Assembly (NCBI RefSeq): GCF_000143415.4
Contig: NW_003314283.1
Coordinates: forward strand, 1,936,258 to 2,000,257
DNA length: 64,000 nt
Origin: Selaginella moellendorffii
Taxonomy: Eukaryota > Plantae > Lycopodiophyta
Direction of reading: 5' to 3'
Shown here: positions 11,711-52,699 of the stretch, in pieces
How the letters are laid out: each line of letters begins with the position of its first letter
Position numbering within the stretch: the first letter of the stretch is position 1
Program-made: the position numbers and the translations under genes
Notes under the pieces: generated by a model
Seen by the model: the letters and a program-made list of their open reading frames with translations, nothing else
What the model was told of the DNA's origin: nothing
Databases searched by the model: none

Positions 11711-12041
11711 TATATTGGTTGCCAAGGACATTTACAGACAACAGCAACAAACTACAACCACCCGAGCAAAAGGAAAGAAGAAGGTGATCGCTTAGTCAGT
11801 CAAAGATCCCTTGATATCAATTGCAAGTGACTCTCTGTTTGCACCAAATTTAGTAACATAGTGAGTGGCTTGTAAACTCCCCTTCAAGTCACTACTCTCA
11901 TCTCCTCCTAGGATCTAGCTTAGGTAGATTTTGAACTTATGAGTTGAGCTTACGACTTCTCAAACACAAGAAAAACATTAGCTCATTTTGAACCAACATT
12001 TTTTCATCTTTCCAATTTTGATTTAATCTATATTTCCAAGT

Positions 12042-13159
12042 TGTCACGAATCGGGTATCGAAAGTTACCTGACAAACACTCTTACCTTACTGCCACGATG
12101 GCAGGAGGTCGGTATTGCTGGACCCTTTATCAGTCCCTCTTGTTCAAATGTTAGTAAACTGAACTTTGCATCTGTACTTGGCCGGATGAGCATAAGGATG
12201 GAATTCCTAAGTGTCTATTCAGCCAAGCATACTTGGCCCGGCTTTTAATTCTCTTTTGCTCTGTCTTGCACTGGCTTGACAAGAACCCTTGCGTATTGAG
12301 ATTAGTCCCTCAATATCGCTACCGTGTTTGCCAAACACCCTCGCTATCATGCCCTTTGTGTTAGTCTCAATTCAGTCCCAAATGCTATTTATGGAAAGTG
12401 TCTAGATTTGCACATTTGGCATATCTACGGAATGTAGAGATTGTCTTGAACACAACGGTGTTCGTCCCATGTCCAAATTCGCAATCTAAGGACATTCCAT
12501 ATTTAGTAAGTTTTGAGCTTGTTGCAGAGACTAACTCTTGATACTAAGGGAGGCTTGGGGTGAAAGCCCAAAGCATGTGTTCCTCAAGGGGTGGGGGGGC
12601 CTGTCGGGGGTTCTAAATGTATAGTAGGGATAGTGGGTAGGTCGAGCATGGCCGACCAACCTGAGGCATAGTCTAGCTTTCGCTTGCGTGCCTGTCCTTG
12701 TTCTGTGTCCAGCTTGGGTCTAAGCCCAAGTTCCATTCCATGCTAGCCGGTGCAGTACCCATGCTCTCTCGTTAGGCCACCGGTATGCCGAAATAGCGCC
12801 AGACTCCGTTTTGTGTGCTGGTCCTGGCATTGGGATGCTGGTTGCTCTAGGACTGTTCCAAGTCGCTCCAGGCTCTTGTTCCTTCACTCCTTGGGTTGTA
12901 TGCTTGGGAGTTACTCCGTGGTTCAGTTCCATCACTCCTTGGCTCCACACTTGGGAGTCTGGCACCGTTCCTTCATTCAATGGCCCAAGGCCCTGAACCA
13001 CAGGTTCCACACCACTGTCCTGTGGACACGTGGCATGGACACGTGGCATGTGACATGTGGCATGTGTCACGTGGCATAAAGAGGGTTTAGGTTCCGCTTC
13101 GTGGTGTTATCCTATGGTAAATCACCATAGGATAAAGGGTCAAAACCACGTGCACTACA
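12042..13159 (+). mobile_element. Solo LTR of family C with TSD CAAGT
   Basis: TGTCACG...ACTACA termini, CAAGT at 12037-12041 and 13160-13164; reverse complement of the LTRs at 44898-46048 and 51050-52183. Confidence 0.95.
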
Positions 13160-13199
13160 CAAGTAAATTCAACAAATAAAATACAAATATAAATATAGA

Positions 13200-13983
13200 T
13201 CCAGACATTAAAAGCAATCTAAAAACACTTCTCAAGCTCCGCAACTGTAAGGCTTGCTTGTGGATGTAATGGTTGATCTTAGGATCTTGGTTTAGTTCTT
13301 GCACAAAAAGGTATTAAATGTGCTTGCAGACTAAATATATCTTTCCAATGTTCTCCATTTATGTAAAATTTGGACAGGTACAAGATGGATTTTTGTATAT
13401 TCTAATAGTGTAGCTCGTATCTTTTGACAACTCAATCACAACAACAAACTCTTTAACCATAGCATTGATGTAATTTGTCTTTGTGATTGTGCACTTTAAT
13501 TCGTTTGCCAACTTGATCTTTTCTTGCATACCTTTCAAAATGGAAGACTTATATTATACAGCCTTCCCATTCCTAGCTGGTCGTGTATCCTGGTCTAGTG
13601 TTGACATTGGTGGCATAATAGTATCAATAGCAACATTTGAGGAAGTCTTTAGCTTGAAACCTACTCTCTCTAGACTTTCAATCTCTTTTTTCAAAAGATT
13701 GCAGCTTCACTTAGCAGCTTCACAAAATCCAGCTTTAAAATAATTGAGCTGTGGATCCCACTTGTATGAGTAACAGTAGTTCCACAATAGTAAATCCAAC
13801 TTGACTGACAGCCCTTTATCCCTAGATCTCGACAGCCCTAGAAACATGGCATTGCTAAAGAACTTGAACTTATGCGAGACAATGAGCTTGACTCCTAATC
13901 ATTCCGGAGCAACATGCATTGCTTTTGGCATTGACTCTTCAAATTGCCCAATTGATACAAGAAATTGGTTTACGAGCAATAAC
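13200..13983 (-). pseudogene. SWIM zinc-finger ORF remnant (MULE-like), mirror of 44074-44850
   Basis: Minus strand YTIRIYKNPSCTCPNFT*...CKHI*YLF gives the CxC...CxH SWIM pattern, with stops. Confidence 0.6.
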
Positions 13984-14340
13984 TGTTGCAAATATAACTT
14001 TAGGTATCGAAAGTTACATATCAGCTAGTCCTTTCAGATATTCTTTTCTTACTACGATGACCGTAGGAGGTTGGTATTGTTAGACCCTTTATCAGTTCAA
14101 GTGTTAGTAAACTAGACTTTGCATTTATACTTGGCCGGACGAGCATAGGGAAAAAATTCCTAAGTGTCTATTTAGTCAAGCATACTTGGCCCGGCTTATT
14201 AATTCTCTTTTTCTCTATCTTGCACTGGCTTGATAAAAACCCTTGCATATTGAGATTAATATCTTAATATTGTTGGATGATAGCTTACCATGCCTGTCAA
14301 ACACCCTTGCTATCATACCCTTTTTGTTAGTCTCAACTCT
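13984..14340 (+). mobile_element. Older truncated family-C LTR fragment (mirror 43720-44073)
   Basis: Starts TGTTGCAA; diverged homology to 12042-12370 (CATACTTGGCCCGGCTT, CTTGCACTGGCTTGA). Confidence 0.75.
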
Positions 14341-16399
14341 ACCCCTATTAAGTAAAAACGAGCTTGGAAAGTAAAAACTAGATGAATTGGTGCCGAGTGA
14401 ACCCATTGATAGTACTCTCAAAAGAAAGATGAAGGGGTCAATAACTTATTCATTCAAGCATCCTCCAATACTTGCGCAACTTCTCATTTCTCAAAAGAAT
14501 CTCTACATCAAGACCATAGCACCAATAAGACATTATTAATACCAAAGCTTCCACTTAGGAAATAGATGATGCTAATCAAAAAATGTCAACAACACAAATA
14601 TGTGTGGCCAACCTTATCACATGTCTAGCAATAAACATTATGGTCATAACTACGTCCTTGCCCTTGTCTTTGAACACAAGCAACAATAGCATCAACTTCT
14701 ATCAGAACAAGATCATCTCCCACAAAAAGTGGCATTAAAGCATATGCAACAATAAGTGAAAGAAGTGATGTTCCATAATGTTATGCTAGTCAAAGAATGT
14801 TGTCTAAGGTGACTGGAGCTAGTGCATATATGAGTCCCATAAGACATTGCTGAAGCATTGGCCACAATATTCCCAATTTATTCCGCTCCGACATAATTGG
14901 CTATATACAAAGTAGGAGGATTTAGAAGTAAAATTGCATCGTTGACGAAAATGACCCCTAATAAAGATAATGCAATTCTTATAAGGCTTGTCAATATGTC
15001 TAAATAATTGTTTGATTGTGCTCAAACCATTGTACCATTGCAATGCTATCCCTTTAAAACATGTGGGGAAATTATATAGACACTAAATATCATCCCAAAA
15101 ATGATAAGTGGTAATCACTATAAAGTGATCAAACTAATGATATACATCATCCCCAAAATTCCCACAAAAGAACTCCAACTGAACTCAATGATGGGCAACA
15201 ATAGTAAGAGATACACCACATGCCATGAATGCCACTATCAATTGAGTCTGATTGTTCAATTGCAATTACATAGCATTGAGAAATTGCACCAACTTTTACT
15301 CTAGAGTCAAAGAAGGAGGAAGTTACTATTTTGCCATAAAGATGAATGGAAAAAAGCAAAAAAAATAAAAAGAAAAAAAGAAATTGAAAAGCTACATAAA
15401 TAAGAGAGATCTAGATAATGCAAAAGCTAAATCTAAACCAAACACTCCTTAAAGACAATTAGAATTACCCTTCACTTCCACTAATATGAGTGCATTAAAT
15501 ATGGAAATGGAATACAAAAATGTGTAATCTCAAAACCCTAGCTTATATACAGGAGCAAGTGGTTCAAATTGAAATCAATTTTATGGCTATCAAAATTCCA
15601 CTATGTTAATATTAATATATGGCATTATCAAAAAAATTATTTTACTTATATTTTATAGAATATTTATATTAATTAATAATATAAAACTAAATAAATATTA
15701 TTATACATGAAAAAGTTCAATATGCACAATAAATATTTTTCAGAAATTGTTCAATAAGGAACTTCTTTACTTTAGAAGTTTATAACTACAGCAAGCTATA
15801 TAAAATTAAATATAAAATGCTAGCTTTCAAAGATGTCATCTTGATCATACATTTTAAATTTAGAAAAATGTTTTAAATTAAAAGAATGACGTTAATTATT
15901 TTTCACTTTAAGGAAAATGGGAATATATCTATGATACCCATATATATTCTATAATAATCCTCAATTTTAATAAACTTTTCTCTAATTCATTTATAATGGG
16001 GTAGGGGATATGGGCAATTCCAAATATAATGGGGATAATGGGTAGGTTGAGGTATGAACTACTTGAGATATTATTTATCTCCCCATTAGGTGTGCTATCT
16101 TTTGTTTTGAATCTTGCTTATATCTAAGCCTAAACTCTACCATGTTAGTTGGTGTATTTTGCTATAAATATGCTAAAATCATCTAGCTTTGTTTTGCATG
16201 TTGATTTTAGAGTTGGAATTCTAAATGCTCTAAAACTATTATGATATTGCTCCATGTTCATGTTCCTTCATTTTTTTGTTATATGCTTAAGAGTTTAACT
16301 TCATCCTTTTGTTCACTGTTAGCTCTAAAACTTAGATTCTGTTCTGGTGCCCTTGTTCAAGGGTTAAATTCCATTTTATAATTATTCACTATAGGGAAG

Positions 16400-17191
16400 T
16401 TATGGTAGCTCTTCATCCTGTTCATTCCATATACTAATATTGTATAGAGTTTTTCTCTCAATAACAGCATAGGATATTGCACTTCCTACCATCAACAAAG
16501 AGAGGTACCAACTGAAAAGCAATGTTCCCATAGCTTTGGACTGGTTGACAAGGTTTTCACTGCCACACTCGATCTTTTGGTGGTGACGAACAAACACTTG
16601 GCAACCCAGAGGCAGGAACGTTGCTGGGAACACAAGAAGTAATGAGAGCTGAAGCAGCCAAATGCCATGGAAGATGATACAAATTGACTTCCAAAACTTG
16701 ATCATCATGGCATTGTGATTCTGTGGCACAAACACTTCCACGAGGCTTGAGAACATACAGGCAGTCACAATGAGCTGTAGAAGCATATGATAATGTCCTT
16801 CCACGCCGACATGATCCGTGGAATGCCAATGAAAGAGGAAGAGTTCTTGGGCGAACGCTGCTGCTTCCATGAGACTTACAAAAGCACTTGGCAAGTGTAG
16901 CTTGGAACGTAAACAGAGTGCATAGATCATGAACGGAATAGCCATGGAGATGTGCTCCAGGTCAGGATAGCTTCGTGTTGGCTGAAGAATGCAGTGGAAA
17001 GTGATGACTCCTGCACTCCCAAGGAAGAGAATGTAAAACTCAGCTGGCTTTGTAATGAGGGAGAGTCGCCCAGGTTTTTCATGGCCTCGAAAACGAGATG
17101 CTGCATTCGTGAGAAGAAGCAAGAGTCCCCAAAAGATGAACGCAATTGCTGGAATACCATGACCAAGGAACACAAGAAATCTGTTTGCCAT
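16400..17191 (-). CDS. TMEM45/DUF716 family multi-pass membrane protein, copy 1
   Basis: Intact intronless 263-aa ORF with GHGIPA, LEHISM, AFAQELFLFHWHSTDHVGVEGHYH, FHGIW and PLGC motifs typical of plant TMEM45. Confidence 0.9.
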   Translation of the reverse strand: MANRFLVFLGHGIPAIAFIFWGLLLLLTNAASRFRGHEKPGRLSLITKPAEFYILFLGSAGVITFHCILQPTRSYPDLEHISMAIPFMIYALCLRSKLHLPSAFVSLMEAAAFAQELFLFHWHSTDHVGVEGHYHMLLQLIVTACMFSSLVEVFVPQNHNAMMIKFWKSICIIFHGIWLLQLSLLLVFPATFLPLGCQVFVRHHQKIECGSENLVNQSKAMGTLLFSWYLSLLMVGSAISYAVIERKTLYNISIWNEQDEELP

Positions 17192-17794
17192 TGTATCACA
17201 TGTTTCCTTGACAAGCTTGAAATTTAAGGTGATGTATCACCGGGTCAAGGACGGTATTCTTATACTCATGTTAAAGCCGGTCATTGGTTGGTTGGCTATT
17301 CATTGATTGACCAGTATTGAAGAGCTTAGACTTTGATCAAAGTAAAATATCGAAAGTTCTGTATCCACCTTGACCAACATTTCTGAGTGACTAACTTCTG
17401 TCATCTTTATTTGTCATGTATTCTTCCATTGACCACCACTATATGCTGGAATACCATGACCAAGGAACACTAGAAATCTGTTTGCCATTGTGTCACATGT
17501 GCTTGAAATTTAAAGTGATGTATGACCGGGTCAAGGACGGTATTCTGACACTCATGTAGTCGGTCATTGGTTGGTTTGATCCGAAGAGCCTAGACTTTTC
17601 AAATTAAAGTATGGAAAGTTCTGTATCCACTGTTCATTTGCCTATTTCTGGGTTTGCTATTGTATTGTCATGTTCTTCCATTGCCTAAACTTTGATCAGA
17701 GTAAAGCATCTGAATCCACCACGACCTAGACTCATGGAGGTCAATTGCTCATCAGCTTTTTCATTTGAGTTCTGGATTAACAAGTTAGCATTTC

Positions 17795-20030
17795 TTAAGA
17801 ACTGCCAAGACGAGGAAGAAATGAAGGTATGCTGAGGCCAATAGATGCGTCCTCATGTTCCTTTGCCCGAAGCTTATACCTCCAACTTTGAAGGCTGTCC
17901 CAGAACGTGATGCCTAAAAATGTGACCCAAAAGCCAATAAACACACCGCAGCCAAATGCCCACACTGAAGCCTCACGGAAGAGGAAGTCCTCCCAACTTT
18001 TGTGACTTGCAGGGTGCTCTTGATCCTTTGTTGCATAGCCACAAGGAGACAATGGAAACCCACAAAGGTTCTTATTGCCTTGGAATGCAAGTGGAAACCG
18101 AGTGTTTAAATTGTATGCCGTTGGGACCAATCCGCTTAAGTTGTTGAATGAAACATTAAAGGCTGACAAAGGCAATTCCCCAAACTCGTTTGGGATCCTG
18201 CCTTGGAGCATGTTCCAGGATAAGTCAAGCGACTGAAGCTTTTTCAAGCTGGAAAGGTTGAGAGGTATGGCACCGGTGAACTGGTTGTGCGAGAGGTTAA
18301 GATGCATTAGTCCAACCAGTTGCCCAATTTCTTCTGGGATGACACCCTCGAGAGAGTTGCTTGAGATGTCCAATGAAGTCATGTTGTTTGCAACAACGAT
18401 CGTTGTCCGATCAAACTGTATCCTTGCGTCGTTGACTATGATGACCAGGCTCAACTCTACCCCTGTGTAAATGCCAAGATTCAAATCCCCACTCGTGTTG
18501 CCCTTGAAACCTTGAAACTTCCAAAGCGCGCGTGGCACCTGCCCTGTGAGCTTATTGTTTGACAGATCTAGAATTTGGAGCCAAATGAGATTGGTGGTGC
18601 AATCTGGAATCTGCCCAAACAGCTTGTTGTATGCAAAAGACAATATCATAATTCCTGACCAGCTGCAAGTTTCTTGACTGTGAAATGGTTCCTACTATAG
18701 TCCATGACTCTGAGATAAGTGGAATTCAAGCTTTTTGCTGGAATTGTGCCGCTCAACGTGTTGTTGGAAATGACAAAGAAGACCAAGCTTGTCAAGTTAC
18801 TCAAGTCAAGCAGCACCTCACCCGTGAAATTGTTCTGCGCAAAGTTGACAACCTTGAGCTGGGAGCAATTCCCTAGCCTTGAGCTAATCTCTCCCTGGAA
18901 CTCGTTCGTTGAGAGATCCAAGTAAACCAGGTTAGTGCATGCACCAAACGTTGGCATTTTGCTCCGTATCAAGTTTCCGTGGAGGTCGAGATAGCCAAGA
19001 TTGGTGCATTTGTCGAGTGGAGGAACTTCATTTCTGAGATAGTTGTCACTCAAGTCAAGTATCTCAAGACGATCCAGCTGGCTAATGCCTTTTGGAATGC
19101 TTCCATCTAGATAGTTTTTGTTGAGGTGCAATTGCTGGAGAGCCTTGATCTCTGTGATCAAATGCGGAATGATTCCTGTCAGGCTGTTAACGTCCAAGCG
19201 AAGTAGTACAACAGGAGAAGACGCATTAAACATGGGAATGTTTCCTGTAAAGTTGTTGTAATGGAGCTCTAGGTGCGTTAGAGATGGCATGCCCACCATA
19301 ACATCCGAAGGAATCGATCCGTTGAGAAAATAGTTTTGCGATAGTCCCAACCACTTTAGCCTACGAAGACCAGCAAAAGAGCCAGGTAATGGGCCATATA
19401 GAAGGTTGTCAGACATGTCTAGAAATGTGAGGTGCGAAAGGTTTCCAAGAGTGATTGGTATAAGCCCCTCCAAATTGTTTGTAAAAAGTGATAAACTTTC
19501 CAATTTCTTGAGCTTACCCAGCGATGGAGATATAGAGCCCGTTAAGGTGTTGTTTTCCAGACTGAGGAACCGCAGCTTGGAGCAGTTCCCAACACTCGAT
19601 GGAATAGACCCGCTCAAGAAATTATCAGATAGCCAGAGCTCAGTGAGATTCTGGAGCTGCCCTAATGTTGCTGGAATATGGCCAGTCAATTGGTTCCCTC
19701 TCAAGTTGAGCTCTGTGAGTGAGGAGCAATTTCCGAGGGTGGTAGGAATTTGCCCCGTTATTTTAGATCGAGCTCTGAAAGATATGAAAGCTGCCCAAGC
19801 CTTGGCGTGAGAGTTCCCACCAAGGCTTCATCAAGATCCACAGAGGATAGATGTATGGACACTACTTGGCGTTTAGAATTGCAACTAATGCCTCTCCAGC
19901 TGCAAATCCCATCCTTGCTTCCTTCATGCCAGTTAGAAAAGGTAGAATTGCTTTGGAACATGCCTTGCTTGAACTCCAGTAGAATTTCCATGTCCATGAT
20001 CTTATACAAAAGAAAGAAAACCTTAAGAGT
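17795..20030 (-). pseudogene. LRR receptor-like protein (RLP), two frameshifts, copy 1
   Basis: LRRNT (CSWRGISC), plant LRRs LxxLxLxxNxLxGxIP, island, C-cap FQGNKNLCG, GxxxG TM helix, short tail, no kinase; split into three ORFs. Confidence 0.9.
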
Positions 20031-20169
20031 TTCATTTCAGAATCATGTGATCATACATCAGACGACAGATTCATGCCAAGTGCGAAGAGAAGTACGATGC
20101 CCCAGAGTCATGGTCTGTGGTCAAAGTCATGCAACTACAAGTTTTAATCTTGATTGGCAAGCATGCTGT

Positions 20170-22351
20170 GCTGACTATGCTGCTGTGCTGACTAGCAACC
20201 ATGCCATGTTTGACACCACACCATAAAAGTAGTGTTGCCATGTCTGTAAGCATGAACAATAGAGAGTAACTCTTGCTCATATGTGGAATAATGTTGTTGT
20301 GCAGGATTCAAAATTTGACTCTCATATGCAATAGGTTGTCCCTCTTGTATAAGAACTCCTCCTAGTGCATAACCACTTGCCATCATATGTCACCTCGTAA
20401 AGTTTTGATGGATCAACATTGCACAGAATTTGAGCCTCGCTCAACAATTGTTTCAACACCACAAAACTCTCCTCTTGTGGCTTCTTCCACTCGAATGGCA
20501 CATTTTTGCGTAACAACCGTGTCAAAGGAATAGCCACCTCTACAAATTTATGCTGGAAACATTGGTAGTAACTAGTTATACCAAGAAAAATGTGTAACTC
20601 GGCCACTAAAGTTGGTGTAGGTTAGTTCTCCACCATAGCTACCTTCCTTAGATCCGTCTTGACACCAATATGGCCTAGATATTTCACCTCTAACTTTGCA
20701 AACTTGCATTTTCTCTTCTTCACATAAAGTTTGTTGTTATGGAGTAACAAAAGAACCTTGCATAAATGCACCTTATGCTCCTCCATATTCTTGTTGAAAA
20801 CAAAAATATCGTCTAAGAAAATCTTCACAAACTCATGAAGATAATGCCCAAATACCTCCATCATCAACCGAGTAAATATGGCTGGTGCATTCGTCAAACC
20901 AAACGGCATAACTGTAAACTCAAAATGCCTGAAGCTTGTGTTAAATGTGTGAAACACCAAATCCCTATGCCCCAAAGTGGAGCCAGAAGGGTGCCACGTG
21001 GTGGTGGCTAAAGCAAAAGCCAAACGAGCGTAACACATTTAGATTGAAAGCTCCGACTTGAAAGGTTGAGAGCGGGAGTGGAACTCCCAACGAAGTGCTC
21101 GAGGAACAAGCACGAAGTGAGTGATAAGTGAGTCTCTAGAAAAAGGACACAAGAGGACCAACACATGACACATGGAAGAGTTTGAGATGGAGCCTAAGAT
21201 GGACCCGAGATGGAGTCTGAGATGGAGTCCGAGATGGACCCGAAATGGACCCGAGATGGAGTTCAAGATGGAGTCTGAGATGGACCCGAGGTGGACCCAA
21301 GATGGAGTCCGAGATGGACCGGAGGTGGACCTGAGGTGGACCCAAGATGGAGTCCGAGATGGACCCAAGATGGACCTGAGATGGAGTCTGAGATGGAGTT
21401 TGAGATGAACCCGAGATGGAGTCCGAGATGGAATCGGGACTGAGACTGAGACCGAGACTGAGATCGAGTCCGAGACCAAGGTTGAGACCGAGACTAAGTC
21501 CAAGTCCGAGTCCGAATACTAATATAGGCAGTTGGGTGAAAGCCCAAAGCGATCATCCCCCGGGGGGGGGGAGCTGCAAGGGGTTCCAAAAGTATAGTAG
21601 GGAGAGTGTGGGGGTTGGATACCAGTGGAGCCAATTTGGCTAGAAAAGGCTAGTTTGGCCCAGGAAGGCTATGCCCAGGTGTTGTGTGATGGGTTAACCA
21701 TTCGAAAGTCCAAGACTAGAGTGAATACAGACCAACAAGTGGGTTAGCTTGGTGAAATGTTCAAGGGCTAGCTATAGTTCCCTCGGGAGATCGAATAATC
21801 GATGCTCCTAGTCCAAGTATGGGTGGCACTACCTACTTGGATACCTGGCGTGGCTCAATGGAACCTCACTCTAAGCCCATGGTTAGAGCACCCAAAGGCA
21901 GAAGGCGGGGAGAGTAAAGAGTGTTAAGGAGTGAATCTAGGATGACCACTCATGGACGGATGGCCCAATCTTTGAGAAATGAGATCGCAATACAAGTGGT
22001 GTTGGACCACTGATGTGACCAAGGTGATTGAGCATGGCCTAGTGTAATGGGCTAATATGTCGGTGGTAATGGGCTAATATGTCGAGTGTCGGTCATGGGA
22101 TCGGACATGTGGAGCACTTGGACCAAGCGCAAAGGTTAAGTGGCATGGATGCTATTTTTGAGGATAACAAGCCCCAAGTCCGGAATAGGACTTATGGAGG
22201 TTGTTAGTGAGACTCCTCCAAGTGGTCAGAGGTGTGGTTAAGTGACTAAAGTAGAATAGAAAAATTAGTCGCTTACAAAATGCTATCTTGGAAATAGATA
22301 CATCATCCATTGCAATCTGATAATATCCACTCCTCAAATCAATCTTGGTGA
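20170..22351 (-). pseudogene. Family-D RT/RNase H fragment interrupted by a family-B solo LTR
   Basis: RSGYYQIAMDD (~22337) rejoins HFEFTVMPFGLTNAPA...IFLDD across the TSD AAATG; homologous to 58930-59745. Confidence 0.85.
20948..22277 (+). mobile_element. Solo LTR of family B with TSD AAATG
   Basis: TGTGAAACAC...GTCGCTTACA; AAATG at 20943-20947 and 22278-22282; contains the GAGATGGAGTCC array. Confidence 0.95.
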
Positions 22352-22435
22352 AACCTCAAAAGGTGGCATAGCATAGTCTAGGGCGATTATATCTCTGTCT
22401 TTTTATGCCGGATCATAACATTGGTATCAGAGGAA

Positions 22436-22650
22436 TGTTATGATCCGGCACAAAAAGATAAAGATCTAATCTCCCTAGACTATGTTACGCCACCTCTTGA
22501 GGTTCCTCACCACCCAACCACCCCTGAGCTACCTCAAAAGCTCCATTGTGCTGTTGCTATAGTATGAGCCCTAGGGTAGGTTAAGTCCCTTATACCCTTG
22601 AGCCTCCCTTTGACCAACGTTGACCATATGGTCAAAACTGACACCTAACA
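22436..22650 (-). repeat. Complete family-D short LTR (~215 bp)
   Basis: TGTTA...TAACA termini; matches 61151-61361. Confidence 0.9.
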
Positions 22651-23087
22651 ATACTTCAGGTGATCTTTATTTTGTCCAAAAAGTAATTATGTATCCCCAC
22701 AAATATAAAAGGCTCGTCAATCACAATTTTCTTCCCGAAGGCCCTTCCTATACCAACCTTCAAAAGAGTTAAAGGTAAACCATTCCCCTACTCACCATTG
22801 TAAATTGCTTCTAGTGTAGACTTTGTATAGCAAATGGATATGGATGGAGATGGGTGTGAGACACAAAATCCCTAGGCCCCAAAGTGGAGCCGGAAGGGCG
22901 CCACATGGTAGTGGCCGAAGCGAGAGCCAAACGAGCGTAACACGTTTGGACCAAAAGCTCCGACTTGAAAAGTCAAGAGCGGGAGTGGAACTCCCAACGA
23001 AGTGCTCGAGGAACGAGCACGAAGCGAGCAAAAGGCGAGGCTCCAAAAAGGGACCCAAAAGGACCAACAAATGACACGTGGGAGTGT

Positions 23088-23627
23088 CCGAGATGGACTC
23101 AAGTTGGAGTCCGAAGTGGAGTCCGAGATGGACCCGAGTTGGAGTCCGAAGTGGAGTCCGAGATGGACCCGAGTTGGAGTCCGAAGTGGAGTCCGAGATG
23201 GACCCGAGTTGGAGTCCGAAGTGGAGTCCGAGGTGGACCCGAGATGGACCCGAGTTGGAGTCCGAAGTGGAGTCCGAGATGGAACCGAGATGGAGTCCGA
23301 GATGGAGTCCGAGGTGGACCCGAGATGGACCCGAAATGGAGTCCGAGATGGAGTCCGAGATGGACCCGAGATGGAGTCCGAGATGGAGTCCGAGATGGAC
23401 CCAAGATGGACCCGAGATGGAGTCCGAGATGGAGTCCGAGATGGAGTCCGAGATGGAGTCCGAAGTCGAGACCGAGACCGGGACCGAGACCGCGACCGAG
23501 ACCGAGACCGAGATCGGGACCGAGACCGAGACCGAGACCAAGGCCGAGGCCGAGACCGAGCCCGAGCCCGAGTCCGAGTCCGAATCCGAGTCCGAGTCCG
23601 AGTCCGAGTCCGAGTCCGAGTCCGAAG
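23088..23627. repeat. 11/12-mer (GAGATGGAGTCC/GAGATGGACCC) and 6-mer (GAGACC, GAGTCC) tandem arrays in the B LTR
   Basis: Seen directly; also at ~21184-21515, 29040-29579 and 57270-57767. Confidence 0.95.
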
Positions 23628-24038
23628 CCTGAGAGGGTGAAAGCCCAAAGCGTTCGTCTCCCAGACCCTGGGGGGTTTGGTGAGCTCCAAAAGTATAGTA
23701 AGGGGGAGGACTGCAGTGGAGCCAGTTTGGCCAGGAAAGGCCAGTTTGGCCAGGAAAGGCCAGTTTGGCCCAGGAAGGCCGGACCCAGTGTTGGGTGATG
23801 AGCTGCCCACTGGGAAGTCCAAGACTAGAGTGAACACAGACAGACAAGCGGGGTAGCTTGGTGAAGTGTTCAAGAGCCGGCTCTAGTTCCCCCGGGAGAT
23901 CGACTGGCCGATGCTCCCAGTCCAAGTGTGGGTGGCACTACCTACTTGGATACCTGGTGTGGCTCAACGGAACCCGCTCTAAGCCCATGGCTAGAGCACC
24001 CAAGGGCAGAAGGTGAGGAGAGTACCCAGGTGGCTCGC

Positions 24039-24281
24039 NNNNNNNNNNNNNNNNNNNNNNNNNNNNNNNNNNNNNNNNNNNNNNNNNNNNNNNNNNNNNN
24101 NNNNNNNNNNNNNNNNNNNNNNNNNNNNNNNNNNNNNNNNNNNNNNNNNNNNNNNNNNNNNNNNNNNNNNNNNNNNNNNNNNNNNNNNNNNNNNNNNNNN
24201 NNNNNNNNNNNNNNNNNNNNNNNNNNNNNNNNNNNNNNNNNNNNNNNNNNNNNNNNNNNNNNNNNNNNNNNNNNNNNNNNN
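24039..24281. other. Assembly gap (N run) within the 5' LTR
   Basis: Run of N. Confidence 1.
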
Positions 24282-36326: not shown

Positions 36327-36376
36327 GAAATGCTAACTTGTTAATCCAGAACTCAAATGAAAAAGCTGATGAGCAA

Positions 36377-40935: not shown

Positions 40936-41657
40936 TGCTTCTTCTCACGAATGCAGCATCTCGTTTTCGAGGCCATGAAAAACCTGGGCGACTCTCCCTC
41001 ATTACAAAGCCAGCTGAGTTTTACATTCTCTTCCTTGGGAGTGCAGGAGTCATCACTTTCCACTGCATTCTTCAGCCAACACGAAGCTATCCTGACCTGG
41101 AGCACATCTCCATGGCTATTCCGTTCATGATCTATGCACTCTGTTTACGTTCCAAGCTACACTTGCCAAGTGCTTTTGTAAGTCTCATGGAAGCAGCAGC
41201 GTTCGCCCAAGAACTCTTCCTCTTTCATTGGTATTCCACGGATCATGTCGGCGTGGAAGGACATTATCATATGCTTCTACAGCTCATTGTGACTGCCTGT
41301 ATGTTCTCAAGCCTCGTGGAAGTGTTTGTGCCACAGAATCACAATGCCATGATGATCAAGTTTTGGAAGTCAATTTGTATCATCTTCCATGGCATTTGGC
41401 TGCTTCAGCTCTCATTACTTCTTGTGTTCCCAGCAACGTTCCTGCCTCTGGGTTGCCAAGTGTTTGTTCGTCACCACCAAAAGATCGAGTGTGGCAGTGA
41501 AAACCTTGTCAACCAGTCCAAAGCTATGGGAACATTGCTTTTCAGTTGGTACCTCTCTTTGTTGATGGTAGGAAGTGCAATATCCTATGCTGTTATTGAG
41601 AGAAAAACTCTATACAATATTAGTATATGGAATGAACAGGATGAAGAGCTACCATAA
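40833..41657 (+). CDS. LTR-TMEM45 fusion ORF / 5'-truncated TMEM45 copy 3
   Basis: 34 LTR-derived codons plus a junction ATG (40935) are in frame with TMEM45 from residue 25; one H->Y change (FHWYSTDH). Expression unknown. Confidence 0.55.
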   Translation: MELGLRPKPDVEQGQARKRKLNYASGWSAMPDLPMLLLTNAASRFRGHEKPGRLSLITKPAEFYILFLGSAGVITFHCILQPTRSYPDLEHISMAIPFMIYALCLRSKLHLPSAFVSLMEAAAFAQELFLFHWYSTDHVGVEGHYHMLLQLIVTACMFSSLVEVFVPQNHNAMMIKFWKSICIIFHGIWLLQLSLLLVFPATFLPLGCQVFVRHHQKIECGSENLVNQSKAMGTLLFSWYLSLLMVGSAISYAVIERKTLYNISIWNEQDEELP

Positions 41658-44073
41658 CTTCCCTATAGTGAATAATTATAAAATGGAATTTAACCCTTGA
41701 ACAAGGGCACCAGAACAGAATCTAAGTTTTAGAGCTAACAGTGAACAAAAGGATGAAGTTAAACTCTTAAGCATATAACAAAAAAATGAAGGAACATGAA
41801 CATGGAGCAATATCATAATAGTTTTAGAGCATTTAGAATTCCAACTCTAAAATCAACATGCAAAACAAAGCTAGATGATTTTAGCATATTTATAGCAAAA
41901 TACACCAACTAACATGGTAGAGTTTAGGCTTAGATATAAGCAAGATTCAAAACAAAAGATAGCACACCTAATGGGGAGATAAATAATATCTCAAGTAGTT
42001 CATACCTCAACCTACCCATTATCCCCATTATATTTGGAATTGCCCATATCCCCTACCCCATTATAAATGAATTAGAGAAAAGTTTATTAAAATTGAGGAT
42101 TATTATAGAATATATATGGGTATCATAGATATATTCCCATTTTCCTTAAAGTGAAAAATAATTAACGTCATTCTTTTAATTTAAAACATTTTTCTAAATT
42201 TAAAATGTATGATCAAGATGACATCTTTGAAAGCTAGCATTTTATATTTAATTTTATATAGCTTGCTGTAGTTATAAACTTCTAAAGTAAAGAAGTTCCT
42301 TATTGAACAATTTCTGAAAAATATTTATTGTGCATATTGAACTTTTTCATGTATAATAATATTTATTTAGTTTTATATTATTAATTAATATAAATATTCT
42401 ATAAAATATAAGTAAAATAATTTTTTTGATAATGCCATATATTAATATTAACATAGTGGAATTTTGATAGCCATAAAATTGATTTCAATTTGAACCACTT
42501 GCTCCTGTATATAAGCTAGGGTTTTGAGATTACACATTTTTGTATTCCATTTCCATATTTAATGCACTCATATTAGTGGAAGTGAAGGGTAATTCTAATT
42601 GTCTTTAAGGAGTGTTTGGTTTAGATTTAGCTTTTGCATTATCTAGATCTCTCTTATTTATGTAGCTTTTCAATTTCTTTTTTTCTTTTTATTTTTTTTG
42701 CTTTTTTCCATTCATCTTTATGGCAAAATAGTAACTTCCTCCTTCTTTGACTCTAGAGTAAAAGTTGGTGCAATTTCTCAATGCTATGTAATTGCAATTG
42801 AACAATCAGACTCAATTGATAGTGGCATTCATGGCATGTGGTGTATCTCTTACTATTGTTGCCCATCATTGAGTTCAGTTGGAGTTCTTTTGTGGGAATT
42901 TTGGGGATGATGTATATCATTAGTTTGATCACTTTATAGTGATTACCACTTATCATTTTTGGGATGATATTTAGTGTCTATATAATTTCCCCACATGTTT
43001 TAAAGGGATAGCATTGCAATGGTACAATGGTTTGAGCACAATCAAACAATTATTTAGACATATTGACAAGCCTTATAAGAATTGCATTATCTTTATTAGG
43101 GGTCATTTTCGTCAACGATGCAATTTTACTTCTAAATCCTCCTACTTTGTATATAGCCAATTATGTCGGAGCGGAATAAATTGGGAATATTGTGGCCAAT
43201 GCTTCAGCAATGTCTTATGGGACTCATATATGCACTAGCTCCAGTCACCTTAGACAACATTCTTTGACTAGCATAACATTATGGAACATCACTTCTTTCA
43301 CTTATTGTTGCATATGCTTTAATGCCACTTTTTGTGGGAGATGATCTTGTTCTGATAGAAGTTGATGCTATTGTTGCTTGTGTTCAAAGACAAGGGCAAG
43401 GACGTAGTTATGACCATAATGTTTATTGCTAGACATGTGATAAGGTTGGCCACACATATTTGTGTTGTTGACATTTTTTGATTAGCATCATCTATTTCCT
43501 AAGTGGAAGCTTTGGTATTAATAATGTCTTATTGGTGCTATGGTCTTGATGTAGAGATTCTTTTGAGAAATGAGAAGTTGCGCAAGTATTGGAGGATGCT
43601 TGAATGAATAAGTTATTGACCCCTTCATCTTTCTTTTGAGAGTACTATCAATGGGTTCACTCGGCACCAATTCATCTAGTTTTTACTTTCCAAGCTCGTT
43701 TTTACTTAATAGGGGTAGAGTTGAGACTAACAAAAAGGGTATGATAGCAAGGGTGTTTGACAGGCATGGTAAGCTATCATCCAACAATATTAAGATATTA
43801 ATCTCAATATGCAAGGGTTTTTATCAAGCCAGTGCAAGATAGAGAAAAAGAGAATTAATAAGCCGGGCCAAGTATGCTTGACTAAATAGACACTTAGGAA
43901 TTTTTTCCCTATGCTCGTCCGGCCAAGTATAAATGCAAAGTCTAGTTTACTAACACTTGAACTGATAAAGGGTCTAACAATACCAACCTCCTACGGTCAT
44001 CGTAGTAAGAAAAGAATATCTGAAAGGACTAGCTGATATGTAACTTTCGATACCTAAAGTTATATTTGCAACA

Positions 44074-44850
44074 GTTATTGCTCGTAAACCAATTTCTTGT
44101 ATCAATTGGGCAATTTGAAGAGTCAGTGCCAAAAGCAATGCATGTTGCTCCGGAATGATTAGGAGTCAAGTTCATTGTCTCGCATAAGTTCAAGTTCTTT
44201 AGCAATGCCATGTTTCTAGGGCTGTCGAGATCTAGGGATAAAGGGCTGTCAGTCAAGTTGGATTTACTATTGTGGAACTACTGTTACTCATACAAGTGGG
44301 ATCCACAGCTCAATTATTTTAAAGCTGGATTTTGTGAAGCTGCTAAGTGAAGCTGCAATCTTTTGAAAAAAGAGATTGAAAGTCTAGAGAGAGTAGGTTT
44401 CAAGCTAAAGACTTCCTCAAATGTTGCTATTGATACTATTATGCCACCAATGTCAACACTAGACCAGGATACACGACCAGCTAGGAATGGGAAGGCTGTA
44501 TAATATAAGTCTTCCATTTTGAAAGGTATGCAAGAAAAGATCAAGTTGGCAAACGAATTAAAGTGCACAATCACAAAGACAAATTACATCAATGCTATGG
44601 TTAAAGAGTTTGTTGTTGTGATTGAGTTGTCAAAAGATACGAGCTACACTATTAGAATATACAAAAATCCATCTTGTACCTGTCCAAATTTTACATAAAT
44701 GGAGAACATTGGAAAGATATATTTAGTCTGCAAGCACATTTAATACCTTTTTGTGCAAGAACTAAACCAAGATCCTAAGATCAACCATTACATCCACAAG
44801 CAAGCCTTACAGTTGCGGAGCTTGAGAAGTGTTTTTAGATTGCTTTTAAT
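44074..44850 (+). pseudogene. SWIM zinc-finger ORF remnant (MULE-like)
   Basis: PSCTCPNF...CKHI at ~44669-44740 with in-frame stops. Confidence 0.6.
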
Positions 44851-44897
44851 GTCTGGATCTATATTTATATTTGTATTTTATTTGTTGAATTTACTTG

Positions 44898-47800
44898 TGT
44901 AGTGCACGTGGTTTTGACCCTTTATCCTATGGTGATTTACCATAGGATAACACCACGAAGCGGAACCTAAACCCTCTTTATGCCACGTGACACATGCCAC
45001 ATGTCACATGCCACGTGTCCATGCCACGTGTCCACAGGACAGTGGTGTGGAACCTGTGGTTCAGGGCCTTGGGCCATTGAATGAAGGAACGGTGCCAGAC
45101 TCCCAAGTGTGGAGCCAAGGAGTGATGGAACTGAACCACGGAGTAACTCCCAAGCATACAACCCAAGGAGTGAAGGAACAAGAGCCTGGAGCGACTTGGA
45201 ACAGTCCTAGAGCAACCAGCATCCCAATGCCAGGACCAGCACACAAAACGGAGTCTGGCGCTATTTCGGCATACCGGTGGCCTAACGAGAGAGCATGGGT
45301 ACTGCACCGGCTAGCATGGAATGGAACTTGGGCTTAGACCCAAGCTGGACACAGAACAAGGACAGGCACGCAAGCGAAAGCTAGACTATGCCTCAGGTTG
45401 GTCGGCCATGCTCGACCTACCCACTATCCCTACTATACATTTAGAACCCCCGACAGGCCCCCCCACCCCTTGAGGAACACACGCTTTGGGCTTTCACCCC
45501 AAGCCTCCCTTAGTATCAGGAGTTAGTCTCTGGGACAAACTTGAAACTTACTAAATATGGAATGTCCTTAGATTGTGAAGTTGGACATGGGACGAACACC
45601 ATTGTGTTCAAGACAATCTCTACATTCTGTAGATATGCCAAATGAGCAAATCTAGACACTTTCCATAAATAGCATTTGGGACCGAATTGAGACTAACACA
45701 AAGGGCATGATAGCGAGGGTGTTTGGTAGACACGGTAAACTATCATGTAGCGATATTGAGGGACTAATCTCAATACGCAAGGGTTCTTGTCAAGCCAGTG
45801 CAAGACAGAGCAAAAGAGAACTAAAAAGCCGGGCCAAGTATGCTTGGCTGAATAGACACTTAGGAATTCCGTCCTTATGCTCATCCGGCCAAGTACAGAT
45901 GCAAAGTTCAGTTTACTAACACTTGAACAAGAGGGACTGATAAAGGGTCCAGCAATACCGACCTCCTGCCATCGTGGCAGTAAGGTAAGAGTGTTTGTAA
46001 GGACTAGCCGACAGATAACTTTCGATACCCGAAGTCACATTCGTGACACTCTCCCCCCCTAGGGAAGATCGACGTCCTCGTCGATGCATACTCGAGTCTA
46101 GAATACTGCCAAGGAAACAACTCTAGAAAAAATTCACAATATTCACACTATGTGAGAAATGCACCAATTGAAATGAGTTAGGAGACAACCTCTTTGTCTA
46201 ACGCGGATGCGCTACCAACTCAGACACCTTCTGGCCATCGCCGACAAGGAAATGACCAATGGAGTTAGCCACCATTGCTGCTCTGGGAGTCACCCAACTT
46301 ACAAAAGTGTGATATGCCCTTGCCCGCAGGAACATAGAGAGAGAAGCCAGAAGCCCCAACCTTCCTAAGCAAAGAAACCAAACCTGTCGGTAAGGTTTAG
46401 ATAGACTACTGTAAATAGGCAGTTAGAGTTGTTTACACGGTCACGCCCTTTTAACGGAATAAGGAACATCGACAGAGAGGCGGGTTATGTGACCAATCGA
46501 CAGTAGCTACCACATGACTAGAGATTTCAACATGCACACGAAGTGCCGAAGCCAATTTGCCTATTACTGGCCCAAACTCAAAGATCAATAAATGGACAAT
46601 ATCAAAGTCAGAGACAATGATATCTTAGAGACTTAATTACCAGTGATTAAATTTTAGATTAGAACACAAAAGTATTCCAAATAATTTATCATCCGATAAA
46701 CTAGTATTATAGTAGATAGGAACCACCAAGTTCATCAAAATTGGTAAACACAGGATTCACCATCCAACAAACTTCAATAGCAAGTATATCATCAAATAAA
46801 CTCAATGATGAAACTTAACTACTGAAAATAGCAGACAGTAAACCAACAATTTACTAAAGATAACTCAAAGAACACAAAGTATCTGATGATTCATGGATTG
46901 ACAAGCACAATGCTCGCGAATGTATCACCTGAAGGAAATAACATCCCAACCTATCAAAACTAACTCGAGCAATAATCAACAGAATAGAATGAATGTGGCA
47001 AGACCAACAAACACTCATTCATGCCAACTATCACACTAGCCAATCCGAATAGATCCCAGCTAACAACACTAAGGAACTCAAGTTGCCTAAGCAAATGTCA
47101 GCAACATCCTACTGATGTCTCAAACCCAAAAGACCAATCTAGAGCAAACCACAAAGAACATGTGGTATTGCGAAAAGCCAAAAGCCATCAAAGAGAACAA
47201 CTAACCATCATGAAAGATCATCAATTATCCCATCAAAAAGATATGCCAAATCATCGTAAAAAAAACAATCTACCATCCCGAAGAACAGTAAATCATTCTA
47301 TACCAACAATAATCAAGCAAAATCTTTTGACAAGGATAAACAACTATCCTAGATAATAGTTAGTCATCACCAATGATTGCTAGATGCAAAAGCCAACTTC
47401 AACATCGAAGCTAATGAGCCTAAATTCCTTCCCCAACAACTTCTAACAAATGGAATAATAAGTATGAAAACTCAAAGAACCAAAAGCTTAAAGAAGTCTA
47501 TAGCCAAGTCATGCATAACAATGATCACGAGTCTCGCATGAATTAACTTCAATGCTAAGAAGAAAATCATGGTATGACCCACAATATCCTCCTTAACACA
47601 TCTATAAGCTAAACTCCATAATGCAAAGCTAATGAAGAGCATGTCTGCATCAATCCAAAAGCTAAGCATAACAAAGCTATACTTGACAAGTGATCACCAA
47701 ATGATCCTCCATGAATCCATTTATAGCAAGACGTAACTCACTTCATAACAAGCACAAGAAGAATCATCAATGATCGATATATTTTAACTCAAACCCAATA

Positions 47801-50800
47801 AGGATTTAAACTTTCCAATATCGATCACTAGTTCTTCTGCTTGCAGAGTTAGCATAGTCCACGACTGAATCACTTTTCAAAGAAAAGCCAAAGCTCAACC
47901 CCTACTAAATAATCTCGTCTAGAACACAACTAACTCAAATTTGCCACTCAATTCATTTGAACGTCAACATAGTTGCTAACTAGCAAATGTGTGAATGCTA
48001 ATAATATAAAGCTACAGCTCAAGCATCAACACTAATTGCATTGAGACTAATGAAACTCATTATCAATCTTATGGAGAGACATCTCATCTCACTCAAATCT
48101 CAACATCATCAATGTCAACGACAAGGCATCACTTCAATGCCATCAACACCATAACAAAGCTAGAAGAAAGCAAGAGTGAATCACCACTCAAAACTCTCCA
48201 GCAACTATGCTAACCAAAGTTGAAGATACTTTACTCAGTATCCGAGACTAATCCTTCAGCAAAACTCAGTTACAGATAACACTTCATCACGGAGTGATTC
48301 ACCACATCCAAGACTCAATGAAATCCAACACCACAACTAAATGCAACCAAATGATATCAACAAAGGTAAAGTCAACATGTTAACATGGAAAACCCATGTA
48401 AGTTTAACGACACGATCCTCCGCAACACCATCCGATAAAGCAAGCCCATCACCGCTAAATTATCATCGAGTAAAACAAGTGTCAAAAACCCTTGACAAAA
48501 TCTACAAGCAATCTCTAGTTGCAAAGCAACCAACAATCACTTTTCAATTTGCCTTCACAAGACCCAAACACTAAACTCATGCCATCAAGTTATATACTTG
48601 TCTAATATCCCCAGGTGCGAGATGAAAGTTCATGGACAAGCACGAACTAAATAACTACTTGAATCCAACTTAACCACGATAAACTCACCAATGCATTTAG
48701 CCAATAGCTTTGAGCATGCCTTGAAGAGGTTAGCTACACATGATCAACACTAAGTTGAAACTTAAGTGAAGACCATGAGATGGACTCATGTCAGTACACA
48801 ACTTCCACTTAGACAAAGCTATAGTATGGGTACTAACATCTCAACAATAAACAACTAAGTTGGACATCACCATCCTCAGCCAAGGCATAGGGCCACCAAG
48901 ACTAAGTCAAGATTAGTGAGAGCTCACTACTCTCATAGAGTCTAATGAAATGCAAAGTACAACCTGCCACCAAGCATAATACTACAGAAGAAAGGCACAA
49001 GGGTCACCCTTCTTAGAAAAGTGCAACGGCCACTTTTCTACACTAACTCCAGACTCTATCCAACTCAATTGCCTTAGCCCCAAAAGTTAGCATCCCTTTC
49101 GGGTTGCATCATACAAATTACTTACTAAGGTCTAAGCCAACCAAAGTCAACTCTAACCCCTTCACTAGTTTGTACTGGCTTACGAAAATGGAATGGTTTT
49201 CAGACAAAGTGATAATAGATTAGCCATTGGAAAAGTCTAAGAAAATTTGTGGAAAATTTTTCCATTCTAGAGAAAGAATGACTCTCAATCTAGGAATGCA
49301 AATTTTCAAAACTCAACTAACTTCCTCCTACTTACAACTTCACATAGGTTCACCTCAACACAAATTCTCATGACCTATAGTATGCTTAAGCCTCGAACAT
49401 CTTTTTGCCCATATATTCGATATCCAACACTGATATCCGCAGAATGCAAAATGAACATCTAAAGCTTGATCACGAAAACCACATCTTCAGATATCCATAT
49501 TGCACTAACACTCTTTTTCAATCATTCTCAAGATCCAATGTGAAGCCAAAACACTAACAAGAAAAATGACATGGAAAATCAAGCTTTAAGGAAAATTCCT
49601 CATCACTCGAACAACAATGCCACTTCCACTAACACAAGTGCTAGCAATGTCAATGCTTTAACTTCACACCTTCTCTATCCAACAATCTACTCCAAGTATT
49701 AACGGATAAACTAACAAGTTATAGCAAGTGAATGCTATAACCCTTTCCAACACCTTATGGGCCAACTCTCAAAAGAACAACATACCAACTTAAGCTTAGC
49801 ATAATGGACCACTATCAAGAATTCAGTCAAAACTACTACAATGCTACTTCGTGCAAGTAGACTAGCCTCACCATCAACCACTTTGGGGTTGATCATCGTT
49901 TAACCAAGCAACTTCGTAAACACATTGCTCATTATCACATGGATATGATATGGAAATCACAATGTCTTGATCATCAATCAAGCAACACACAAGCAATGCC
50001 AATGTCATTACTTCAAAGGTGTAGGTGAGTATCAAGTGTCAACTCAATTCGACAAAATGCAACATAAATGCCACACTCCACCGATAGAGACTTACAACAC
50101 CCAACACCACTAACTTTTGTTCACAACACAGACAAACTCATGCCACTCTCTTTCCAACCAAACTCAAAACTAGTCCAACACCAAGCTACTCAAGGAGCAA
50201 TAGCAAAGTTCCCCGGAAAAGAATTAAGCATTGCAACCCAAGTCTTCAATAACAAGCCTAGACAAAATGGTTTAGCGCTTTACTGCTATCCACCCCATAA
50301 CTGATCATTTGTAAGACCATCATCTCCAAGATGCATCAAGATAGGGACTCTTGATTACATACCATGAACACAAGCAATGAGTTAATACCTCGTTGCAAAT
50401 CATCTCTCCAAGAAGAGAGAATGATTTACGTGTTTGATCCTTCGTCCCCGATGACTCTCTTTTCGGTCTAATCTTTGATTACACCTCAAGTTTGCTTTCA
50501 CACTGCCTTCAGTCCAATCCAAGAAAAGTTTATGAGAGAGCACAGCAACAATTACTTGAATCAATAGACTCATCCCTACAGTCTTGATTGATCCACTTGT
50601 AATCATGCCTAGGAAGGATCCACTAGTGCCGTGCTAAATAGCTATGGACCAGCTTATTTACCACTCATAGCAAACCCAGGGAAAGTTTACTTTCACCCAT
50701 GGTACATGGAAAAACTCATAGAACTACTGGAACAACTCATGGAACCACCGATAGGCTAACATTAATCCTGCCAACTCAAAGCATATCCTTGAGTTGCTAA

Positions 50801-52183
50801 TGCACTCACGAGCCTAAGCGCAAACTCGTGCAAATTGGAACAACTTAATCCCTCTTGTGAGCTCAAGCTCAAGCTCACATCATAAGGTACAAGAAGGTAA
50901 CAAAAACCATACCCAAGGAACAATTGCAAAGCCTTTACACCTAAGTGTGTACCCACTCGAATCATCGTTTTCATCTCTGCGTATGCAACAAGATTAGTTG
51001 CCCAATCTCATTGTATAGTACTCGCTGAGACTCATTCTCTGATACCAAATGTAGCGCACGTGGTTTTGACCCTTTATCCTATGGTGATTTACCATAGGAT
51101 AACACCACGAAGCGGAACCTAAACCCTCTTTATGCCACGTGACACATGCTACGTGTCACATGCCATGTGTCCATGCCACGTGTCCACAGGACAGTGGTGT
51201 GGAACCTGTGGTTCAGGGCCTTGGGCCACTGAACGAAGGAACGGTGCCAAACTCCCAAGCATGGAGCCAAGGAGTGACGGAACCGAACCACGAAGCAACT
51301 CCTGAGCATACAACCCAAGGAGCGAAGGAACAGGAGCCCAGAGCGACTTGGAATAGTCCTAGAGCAACCAACATCCCAATGCCAAGACTAACACGCAAAA
51401 CGGAGCCAAATGGAGTCTGGTGCTATTTCGGCATACCGGTGGCCTAATGCGAGAGCATGGGTACTCCACCAGCTAGCATGGAATGGAACTTGGGCTTAGA
51501 CCCAAGCCGGACGTAGAACAAGGACAGGCACGCAAGCGGAAGCTAGACTATGCCTCAGGTTGGTCGGCCATGCCCGACCTACCCACTATCCCTACTATAC
51601 ATTTAGAACCCCCCACGGCCCTCCCCCCCCCCCCCCTTGAGGAACACACGCTTTGGGCTTTCACCCCAAGCCTCCCTTAGTATCAGGAGTTAGTCTCTGC
51701 GACAAACTCAAAACTTACTAAATATGGAATGTCCTTAGATTGCGAATTTGGACATGGGACGAACACCGTTGTGTTCAAGACAATCTCTACATTCCGTAGA
51801 TATGCCAAATGTGCAAATCTAGACACTTTCCATAAATAGCATTTGGGACCGAATTGAGACTAACACAAAGGGCATGATAGCGAGGGTGTTTGGCAAACAC
51901 GGTAGCGATATTGAGGGACTAATCTCAATACGCAAGGGTTCTTGTCAAGCCAGTGCAAGACAGAGCAAAAGAGAACTAAAAAGCCGGGCCAAGTATGCTT
52001 GGCTGAATAGACACTTAGGAATTCTGTCCTTATGCTCATCCGGCCAAGTACAGATGCAAAGTTCAGTTTACTAACACTTGAACAAGAGGGACTGATAAAG
52101 GGTCCAGCAATACCGACCTCCTGCCATCGTGGCAGTAAGGTAAGAGTGTTTGTCAGGTAACTTTCGATACTCGATTCGTGACA
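44898..52183 (-). mobile_element. Intact non-autonomous LTR retrotransposon (family C), TSD ACTTG
   Basis: LTRs 51050-52183 (5') and 44898-46048 (3'); Met PBS TGGTATCAGAG (complement 51037-51047); PPT AGGGGGGGAGAG (complement from 46049); ACTTG at 44893-44897 and 52184-52188; no long ORF. Confidence 0.95.
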
Positions 52184-52699
52184 ACTTGGAAATATAGATT
52201 AAATCAAAATTGGAAAGATGAAAAAATGTTGGTTCAAGATGAGCCAATGTTTTTCTTGTGTTTGAGAAGTTGTAAGCTCAACTCATAAGTTCAAAATCTA
52301 CCTAAGCTAGATCCTAGGAGGAGATGAGAGTAGTGACTTGAAGGGGAGTTTACAAGCCACTCACTATGATACTAAATTTGGTGCAAACAGAGAGTCACTT
52401 GCAATTGATATCAAGGGATCTTTGACTGACTAAGCGATCACCTTCTTCTTTCCTTTTGCTCGGGTGGTTGTAGTTTGTTGCTGTTGTCTATAAATGTCCT
52501 TGGCAACCAATATAAGGCTTTGACCATATGGTCAACATTGGTCAAAGGGAGGCTGAAAGGTATATTAAGGCATATTAGGACTTAACCTACCCTAGGGCTC
52601 ATAGTGGAACGACAGCATAGTGGAGCTTTGGAGGTAGCTCGGGGGTGGTTGGGTGGTGAGGAACCTCAAGAGGTGGCATAGCATGGTCTAGGGAGACTA

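Follow-up and report, generated by a model that had tools for sequence, protein, structure and literature searches.

How does one retrotransposon insertion site come to exist in three states (empty, occupied by a complete element, and reduced to a solo long terminal repeat, LTR) within a short stretch of a single genome? The question is raised by a 64,000-nucleotide stretch of Selaginella moellendorffii (assembly GCA_000143415.2, scaffold GL377587.1; hereafter the window), in which an LTR retrotransposon, termed the C element, and a solo LTR derived from it lie in opposite arms of a palindrome. A first-pass annotation had ordered the events as old duplication, insertion, inverted duplication and excision. 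The analysis described here finds that the solo LTR is a mosaic of 5'-LTR and 3'-LTR types with one switch between them, and that the divergence between the palindrome arms changes abruptly at that switch. The history that we lean towards combines LTR-LTR recombination with a recent arm-to-arm transfer of sequence, in an order that the data leave free.

The insertion site and its occupants

The same flanks were found empty, with the full element and with the solo LTR, all as first described:

12042-13159, sense on the plus strand: solo LTR of the C element, 1118 bp, TG...CA ends, with target-site duplication (TSD) CAAGT at 12037-12041 and 13160-13164
44898-52183, minus strand: full C element, 7286 bp, with TSD ACTTG at 44893-44897 and 52184-52188
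31796-32747, plus strand: empty paralogue of the target region, with the unoccupied site ACTTA at 32630-32634 and contiguous flanks

The solo copy is one LTR only, and it shares its TSD and flanks with the full copy. Reconstructed unoccupied sites, made by fusing the flanks of the full and of the solo copy around one TSD, align without gaps to the empty copy. This copy is 86% identical to the inner flank over 838 bp and 93-96% identical to the outer one over 118 bp, with BLAST E values from 1e-46 to 0. On a second scaffold, another empty copy keeps ACTTG intact at about 49520 of locus L003. The old duplication of the first-pass annotation is a dispersed repeat of 1-1.7 kb with at least two empty copies, and the existence of such paralogues means that the flank was duplicated before the insertion. 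An assembly gap (a run of N at 24039-24281) lies in the spacer of the palindrome and touches none of the three sites.

Self-comparison reveals an inverted duplication, 10997-21208 against 53427-32914, with a spacer of 11.7 kb; the solo copy lies in its left arm and the full copy in its right arm. Since the insertion is common to both arms, it predates the inverted duplication. The flanks are as follows:

10997-12041, plus strand: outer flank of the left arm, 1.8% diverged from 53427-52184 and without the 199 bp of 52700-52898
13160-21208, plus strand: inner flank of the left arm, 0.07% diverged from the right arm
32914-44897, plus strand: inner flank of the right arm, interrupted by the F/DR2 structure described below
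52184-53427, plus strand: outer flank of the right arm

The possibility that the left contig is a misplaced allelic haplotig of the right contig was rejected; the homology stops at both arm boundaries, and the spacer retrotransposon ties the two contigs together in their present order and orientation.

A 114-bp inverted repeat (31010-31123 and 32801-32913, 98% identical) brackets the empty paralogue, and its outer end is exactly the inner end of the right arm. One of its frames resembles a protein-coding fragment, and it was accordingly set aside as a candidate for the terminal inverted repeats of a transposon.

Structure of the full C element

The positions of the primer-binding site (PBS) and of the polypurine tract (PPT) show that the sense strand of the C element is the minus strand:

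51050-52183, minus strand: true 5' LTR, 1134 bp
51036-51047, minus strand: PBS, reverse complement TGGTATCAGAGA, tRNA-iMet type, 2 nt from the 5' LTR
46049-51049, minus strand: internal region, 5 kb, without coding capacity
44898-46048, minus strand: true 3' LTR, 1151 bp, abutted by the PPT at 46049-46067

With the PBS and the purine tract at these positions, the true 5' LTR is the one at 51050-52183, and the 5' and 3' labels of the first-pass annotation were right. The two LTRs are in direct orientation, have TG...CA ends and are 95% identical at aligned bases. No gag or pol was found in the interior, where the longest stop-free piece in the open reading frame (ORF) lists has 122 aa. The ten longest such pieces were scanned against Pfam with no significant match (best E 0.13), and tblastn of 135 ORF pieces of the window, including those of retroelements, against the interior gave no match. 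On sequence grounds, the C element is classed as a non-autonomous LTR retrotransposon, either LARD-like or decayed.

The right-arm element also contains 71 private substitutions in a patch of 600-700 bp (about 10-12%) at 49284-49991, across which a C-family fragment of the right arm (fragment F, below) and the copy on the second scaffold agree with each other. Hypermutation in one direction is ruled out as the cause by the mixed spectrum of the changes, and the patch looks like an ectopic gene-conversion tract from a diverged member of the family.

Mosaic structure of the solo LTR

In a three-way alignment of the LTRs, the informative events left of 12525 are of 5'-LTR type in 14 cases and of 3'-LTR type in 2, and right of 12591 the counts are 0 and 41, respectively (Fisher p=1.6e-11). 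One of the two exceptions, at 12054, is private to the 5' LTR of the right arm, and the 5' LTR of the second scaffold has the base of the solo LTR there; the other is at 12200. The informative sites are thus partitioned by one breakpoint:

12525-12591 by informative sites, 12576-12591 at the narrowest, plus strand: switch from 5'-LTR type (old lineage) to 3'-LTR type, adjoining the G-run GGGGTGGGGGGG

The narrower interval applies only if a private variant of the solo LTR at 12575 is counted as old-lineage.

Trees built for each half from the LTRs of the window and of the second scaffold agree with this division. The 5' half of the solo LTR falls inside the 5'-LTR clade (support 97/95), differs from the 5' LTR of the right arm at 10 of 544 sites and has 9 variants that are absent from both right-arm LTRs. 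The 3' half falls inside the 3'-LTR clade (100/100) and is identical to the 3' LTR of the right arm (0/574 differences); it differs from the 3' LTRs of the second scaffold at 9 sites (arm with the full element) and 26 sites (other arm). Over its two halves, the 3' LTR of the right arm itself has 7+9 differences from the second-scaffold arm with the same outer flank, and 18+26 from the other. Because it is nearest to the arm with the same outer flank, the sequence that it shares with the 3' half of the solo LTR is native to the right arm.

Earlier claims that the solo LTR joins a 5'-LTR first half to a 3'-LTR second half, and that it is a product of LTR-LTR recombination, are borne out by the single clean switch, the trees, and the shared insertion and TSD. 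The crossover had been placed at about 12530-12590, an interval that matches the measured one. Its reading as a crossover is less secure, since a step in arm divergence falls at the same place.

The arms change in divergence at the switch

The outer flanks of the left and right arms differ at 19 of 1045 sites and by a 199-bp indel, and the 8-kb inner flanks differ at 6 sites and by one 1-bp indel. Counted from the switch, the arms differ at 29 of 1579 sites outside it (1.8%) and at 6 of 8633 inside it (0.07%; p=1.5e-18). This 26-fold step falls exactly at the mosaic switch. Had there been just one inverted duplication and then an excision, the two sides should be equally diverged, so at least one additional event is needed. 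The order of old duplication, insertion and inverted duplication is upheld, and excision as the whole of the remaining story is not supported.

A very recent transfer of sequence from arm to arm, ending where the LTR type switches, is needed. The switch marks the end of right-arm-type sequence and may or may not be the original point of LTR-LTR exchange: it may be the edge of a conversion tract, a crossover within the element or an LTR exchange between the arms, and the data fit each of these.

The near-identity of the inner arms does not come from one set of reads used twice. In an alignment of four arms, the left arm shares its base with the second scaffold at 3 of the 5 inner substitutions, so the two arms are distinct real copies.

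The second scaffold

The S. moellendorffii assembly is treated in the literature as containing both haplotypes (PMC3680112). Scaffold GL377697.1, sampled as loci L003-L006, is 97-99% identical to the window in long colinear blocks up to the right end of the window, carries the same palindrome and is probably the other haplotype. According to Banks et al. 2011, the haplotypes are reportedly about 98.5% identical.

One arm of GL377697.1 has the full element with TSD ACTTG (L003 14033-21120). The other, read to the end of the locus at L006 21113, has a 3' LTR that continues into the interior of the element (L006 19908-21113). Neither arm, as sampled in L003-L006, has the solo LTR or the F insertion. 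The presence of a full element in one arm and of a 3' LTR with interior in the other indicates that the solo state is derived and, as far as these sequences go, specific to the haplotype of the window.

The two arms of GL377697.1 are 1-1.5% apart in the non-genic inner flank and 4% apart in the 3' LTR, and arms of the window differ from those of the second scaffold by 1-2%, against 6/8633 between the window's own arms. The near-identity of the window arms over their whole length is therefore recent and haplotype-specific. Across a genic 3.7 kb, the GL377697.1 arms are nearly identical as well, and arm-to-arm conversion is taken to recur in both haplotypes. The outer flanks are star-like in their distances: left against right arm 19/1045, left arm against second scaffold 23/1045, and right arm against second scaffold 22/1244.

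Relative to the outer flanks, the spacer (window 21209-32913 against L003 1974-5970) is inverted between the two scaffolds. The cause would be either a flip-flop inversion between the arms or mis-threading of the near-identical arms by the assembler.

The genes of the arms are the following:

34417-36326 (right arm): LRR receptor-like gene; its left-arm copy is formed by the LRR ORFs at 17795-19704, minus strand
36931-37722 (right arm): DUF716 gene; its left-arm copy is the ORF at 16400-17191, minus strand

The genic part of the arm (window 34393-38138 and its copies, with LRR and DUF716) is 0-0.5% diverged among the four arm copies, and the adjoining non-genic flank 1-2%. This low genic divergence points to selection or to preferential conversion of genes. 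At L006 11768-15095, the LRR gene is interrupted by two N runs and by small Gypsy-like and D-like contigs, and neither a 284-aa LRR gene nor the DUF716 gene is called there; this part is probably a partly assembled transposon insertion. A third, partial LRR-DUF716 paralogue, 96-99% identical and in direct orientation, is found in L002 (GL377697.1 360338-381129), about 110 kb from the palindrome, and stops short of the C insertion site.

Spacer retrotransposon D and right-arm fragment F

Two further structures lie in the spacer and in the right arm:

22855-30603, plus strand: LTR retrotransposon D, 7.7 kb, TSD ATGGG, PBS TGGTATCGGAGC just after 24662 (about 24665), 3' LTR at 28807-30603
38523-40935, plus strand: 29-bp filler and fragment F (F at 38552-40935), between 1522-bp direct repeats at 37001-38522 and 40936-42457

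Retrotransposon D: The assembly gap at 24039-24281 lies inside the 5' LTR of D, where the paralogous LTR has 246 bp against the 243 estimated. On the second scaffold, the D site (L003 at about 4300) is empty and contiguous with a single ATGGG. As D spans the gap and its site is intact and empty on the other scaffold, the two sides of the gap belong together in their present order and orientation. The two LTRs of D are 99.9% identical over 1184 bp, but identity falls to 77% in the 380 bp that follow the gap on its right; the pair appears to be either mosaic or misassembled there.

Fragment F: The fragment (2.4 kb) comes from a C-family copy, of which it retains the 3' part of the 5' LTR, the PBS and 1.87 kb of interior. 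The direct repeats around it differ by one mismatch, and the 29-bp filler resembles an inverted copy of neighbouring sequence, which gives it a templated look. F and its direct-repeat rearrangement are found in the right arm, and in neither the left arm nor the second scaffold. The rearrangement at 37001-42457 creates a third DUF716 ORF (40833-41657) with a new N-terminus. The LTR breakpoint of F lies 43 bp beyond the switch of the solo LTR, on the opposite side of the same G-run. F does not reach the portion of the solo LTR that is of left-arm type, and it gives a star-like pattern of distances with the two references at hand. As a long shot, F may derive from the very DNA that the left arm lost in the formation of the solo LTR, captured either as an excised circle or as a template-switch copy. 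Such a piece may have patched a break in the opposite arm, along with the 1522-bp duplication and the 29-bp templated filler. If this were true, both products of one LTR-LTR recombination would have been kept within 30 kb.

How the solo LTR may have formed

The kind and order of the recombination events are reconstructed from the comparisons above. The relative divergences are graded: about 14% between the empty paralogues and the flank, 4.6-6.3% between the two LTRs, 1.8-4% between arms, and 0.07% between the inner arms. This grading gives the order of repeat copies, insertion and inverted duplication, followed by solo formation and homogenisation. First, a non-autonomous LTR retrotransposon would have inserted once into a copy of the dispersed repeat, with TSD ACTTG. 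Next, the region with the element and the LRR and DUF716 genes would have undergone inverted duplication. Finally, in the haplotype of the window, homologous recombination between sequences of the 5' and 3' LTRs would have left only a solo LTR of the left-arm copy, and gene conversion or related copying would very recently have made the left arm near-identical to the right one over a stretch that begins midway through the LTR and reaches the inner arm boundary.

The last two events may have taken place in either order. In one variant, the deletion preceded a conversion by the right arm whose tract extended outward along the inner flank and ended within the LTR; the initial crossover would then have lain at or 3' of the present switch and been overwritten. 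In the other, homogenisation came first and was followed by a crossover within the element, with the divergence boundary inside the deleted 6.2 kb. The data do not separate the two variants, and it is to both taken jointly that our moderate preference applies.

The elements of this reading have precedents. LTR-LTR homologous recombination is a known route to solo LTRs (PMC5751070), gene conversion among plant LTRs is common (PMC7251063), and both solo-LTR formation and LTR gene conversion are documented in plants (PMC7251063, PMC5751070). Ectopic conversion is also judged active in the C family itself, from the 71-change patch and from the LTRs of the full element, which are 2.4% apart in their 5' half and 6.8% in their 3' half (p=5e-4). 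Since the patch and the uneven halves mean that conversion from other copies has distorted the divergence, the LTR-divergence dating proposed by the first-pass annotation is unreliable at this locus.

Several points weigh against the combined history. The conversion tract would need to span at least 9 kb, which is long, and the data give no order for the deletion and the homogenisation. The solo LTR could still be an assembly collapse. The divergence step may have lain in the deleted 6.2 kb, in which case the switch is a true intra-element crossover. Moreover, the other arm of the second scaffold enters the comparison only through L006 21113 and thus without its outer part.

The strongest competitor is the model of the first-pass annotation, in which a crossover between the left arm's own LTRs at about 12530-12590, after the duplication, removed the interior, with the divergence boundary in the deleted 6.2 kb. 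It accounts for the single clean switch, the kept TSD and the expected 5'-then-3' order; the 6.2 kb is a large target for a homogenisation boundary, and the near-identical genic arms on both scaffolds imply that conversion recurs. However, the deletion would have to postdate a homogenisation that is just 0.07% old, a small share of the history of the arms, and the model still requires an additional conversion event that the first-pass annotation did not include. It is considered rather unlikely.

An assembly artefact is a less probable explanation still. The left arm would in truth be full, and a Sanger assembly of two haplotypes would have lost the interior by joining its 5' LTR to its 3' LTR where the G-run lies. 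The G-run beside the switch is a frequent kind of site for read failure, four near-identical arm copies are present in the diploid assembly, other odd structures (F/DR2) and a scaffold gap lie nearby, and the second scaffold is without a solo LTR in either arm. On the other hand, the contig is unbroken through the solo LTR, the outer and inner parts of the left arm are distinct and share variants with the other scaffold, and the scaffold join is independently corroborated. In addition, the templated look of the filler at the F junction is typical of real repair. An artefact thus appears improbable.

A single inter-arm event, in which the left 5' LTR recombined with the inverted right 3' LTR to give a chimeric solo LTR, moved right-arm inner sequence to the left and flipped the spacer, would fit the right-arm type of the solo 3' half (0 differences, against 9 and 26 to the second-scaffold 3' LTRs) and the opposite spacer orientations, but it is highly improbable because the predicted right-arm tandem of LTR-interior-LTR-interior-LTR with a left-arm-type inner flank is absent from the self-comparison, a further deletion and conversion would be required, and the flip is indistinguishable from mis-threading of 99.93% identical arms.

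Comparison with known systems and significance

Solo LTRs of plants: As in plant solo-LTR formation by unequal homologous recombination (PMC5751070, PMC7251063), one LTR remains at the original site with the original TSD, and it is chimeric, of 5'-LTR and then 3'-LTR type with one switch. In contrast to such cases, the reference LTRs lie here in a paralogous arm, and the switch coincides with the 26-fold divergence step.

Palindromes: The ampliconic palindromes of the human Y chromosome are an example of arm-to-arm gene conversion in palindromes or inverted segmental duplications. The Selaginella locus resembles them in having genes in its arms and in the closeness of these arms, 0.07% apart within the haplotype against 1-2% for alleles or the arms of the other haplotype. 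It differs in the loss of 6.2 kb of retrotransposon sequence from one arm and in a homogenised tract that ends within the LTR left behind.

LARD-type elements: The C element shares with these LTRs of 1.13 kb, a tRNA-iMet-type PBS, a PPT, a 5-bp TSD and a 5-kb interior without gag or pol. No autonomous partner was identified for it, and its sequence gives no superfamily assignment.

The mechanism is a textbook one, and this locus has probably not been described before. By bringing together the empty, full and solo states, it cleanly illustrates how LTR recombination removes a retrotransposon. It is also a warning that, where a region is duplicated or palindromic, a solo LTR compared with a paralogous reference can show a mosaic breakpoint that is the end of a conversion tract and not a crossover. 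Conversion likewise distorts LTR divergence here and makes it unusable for dating. For S. moellendorffii, the locus documents structural differences between two haplotype scaffolds around a pair of LRR receptor-like genes.

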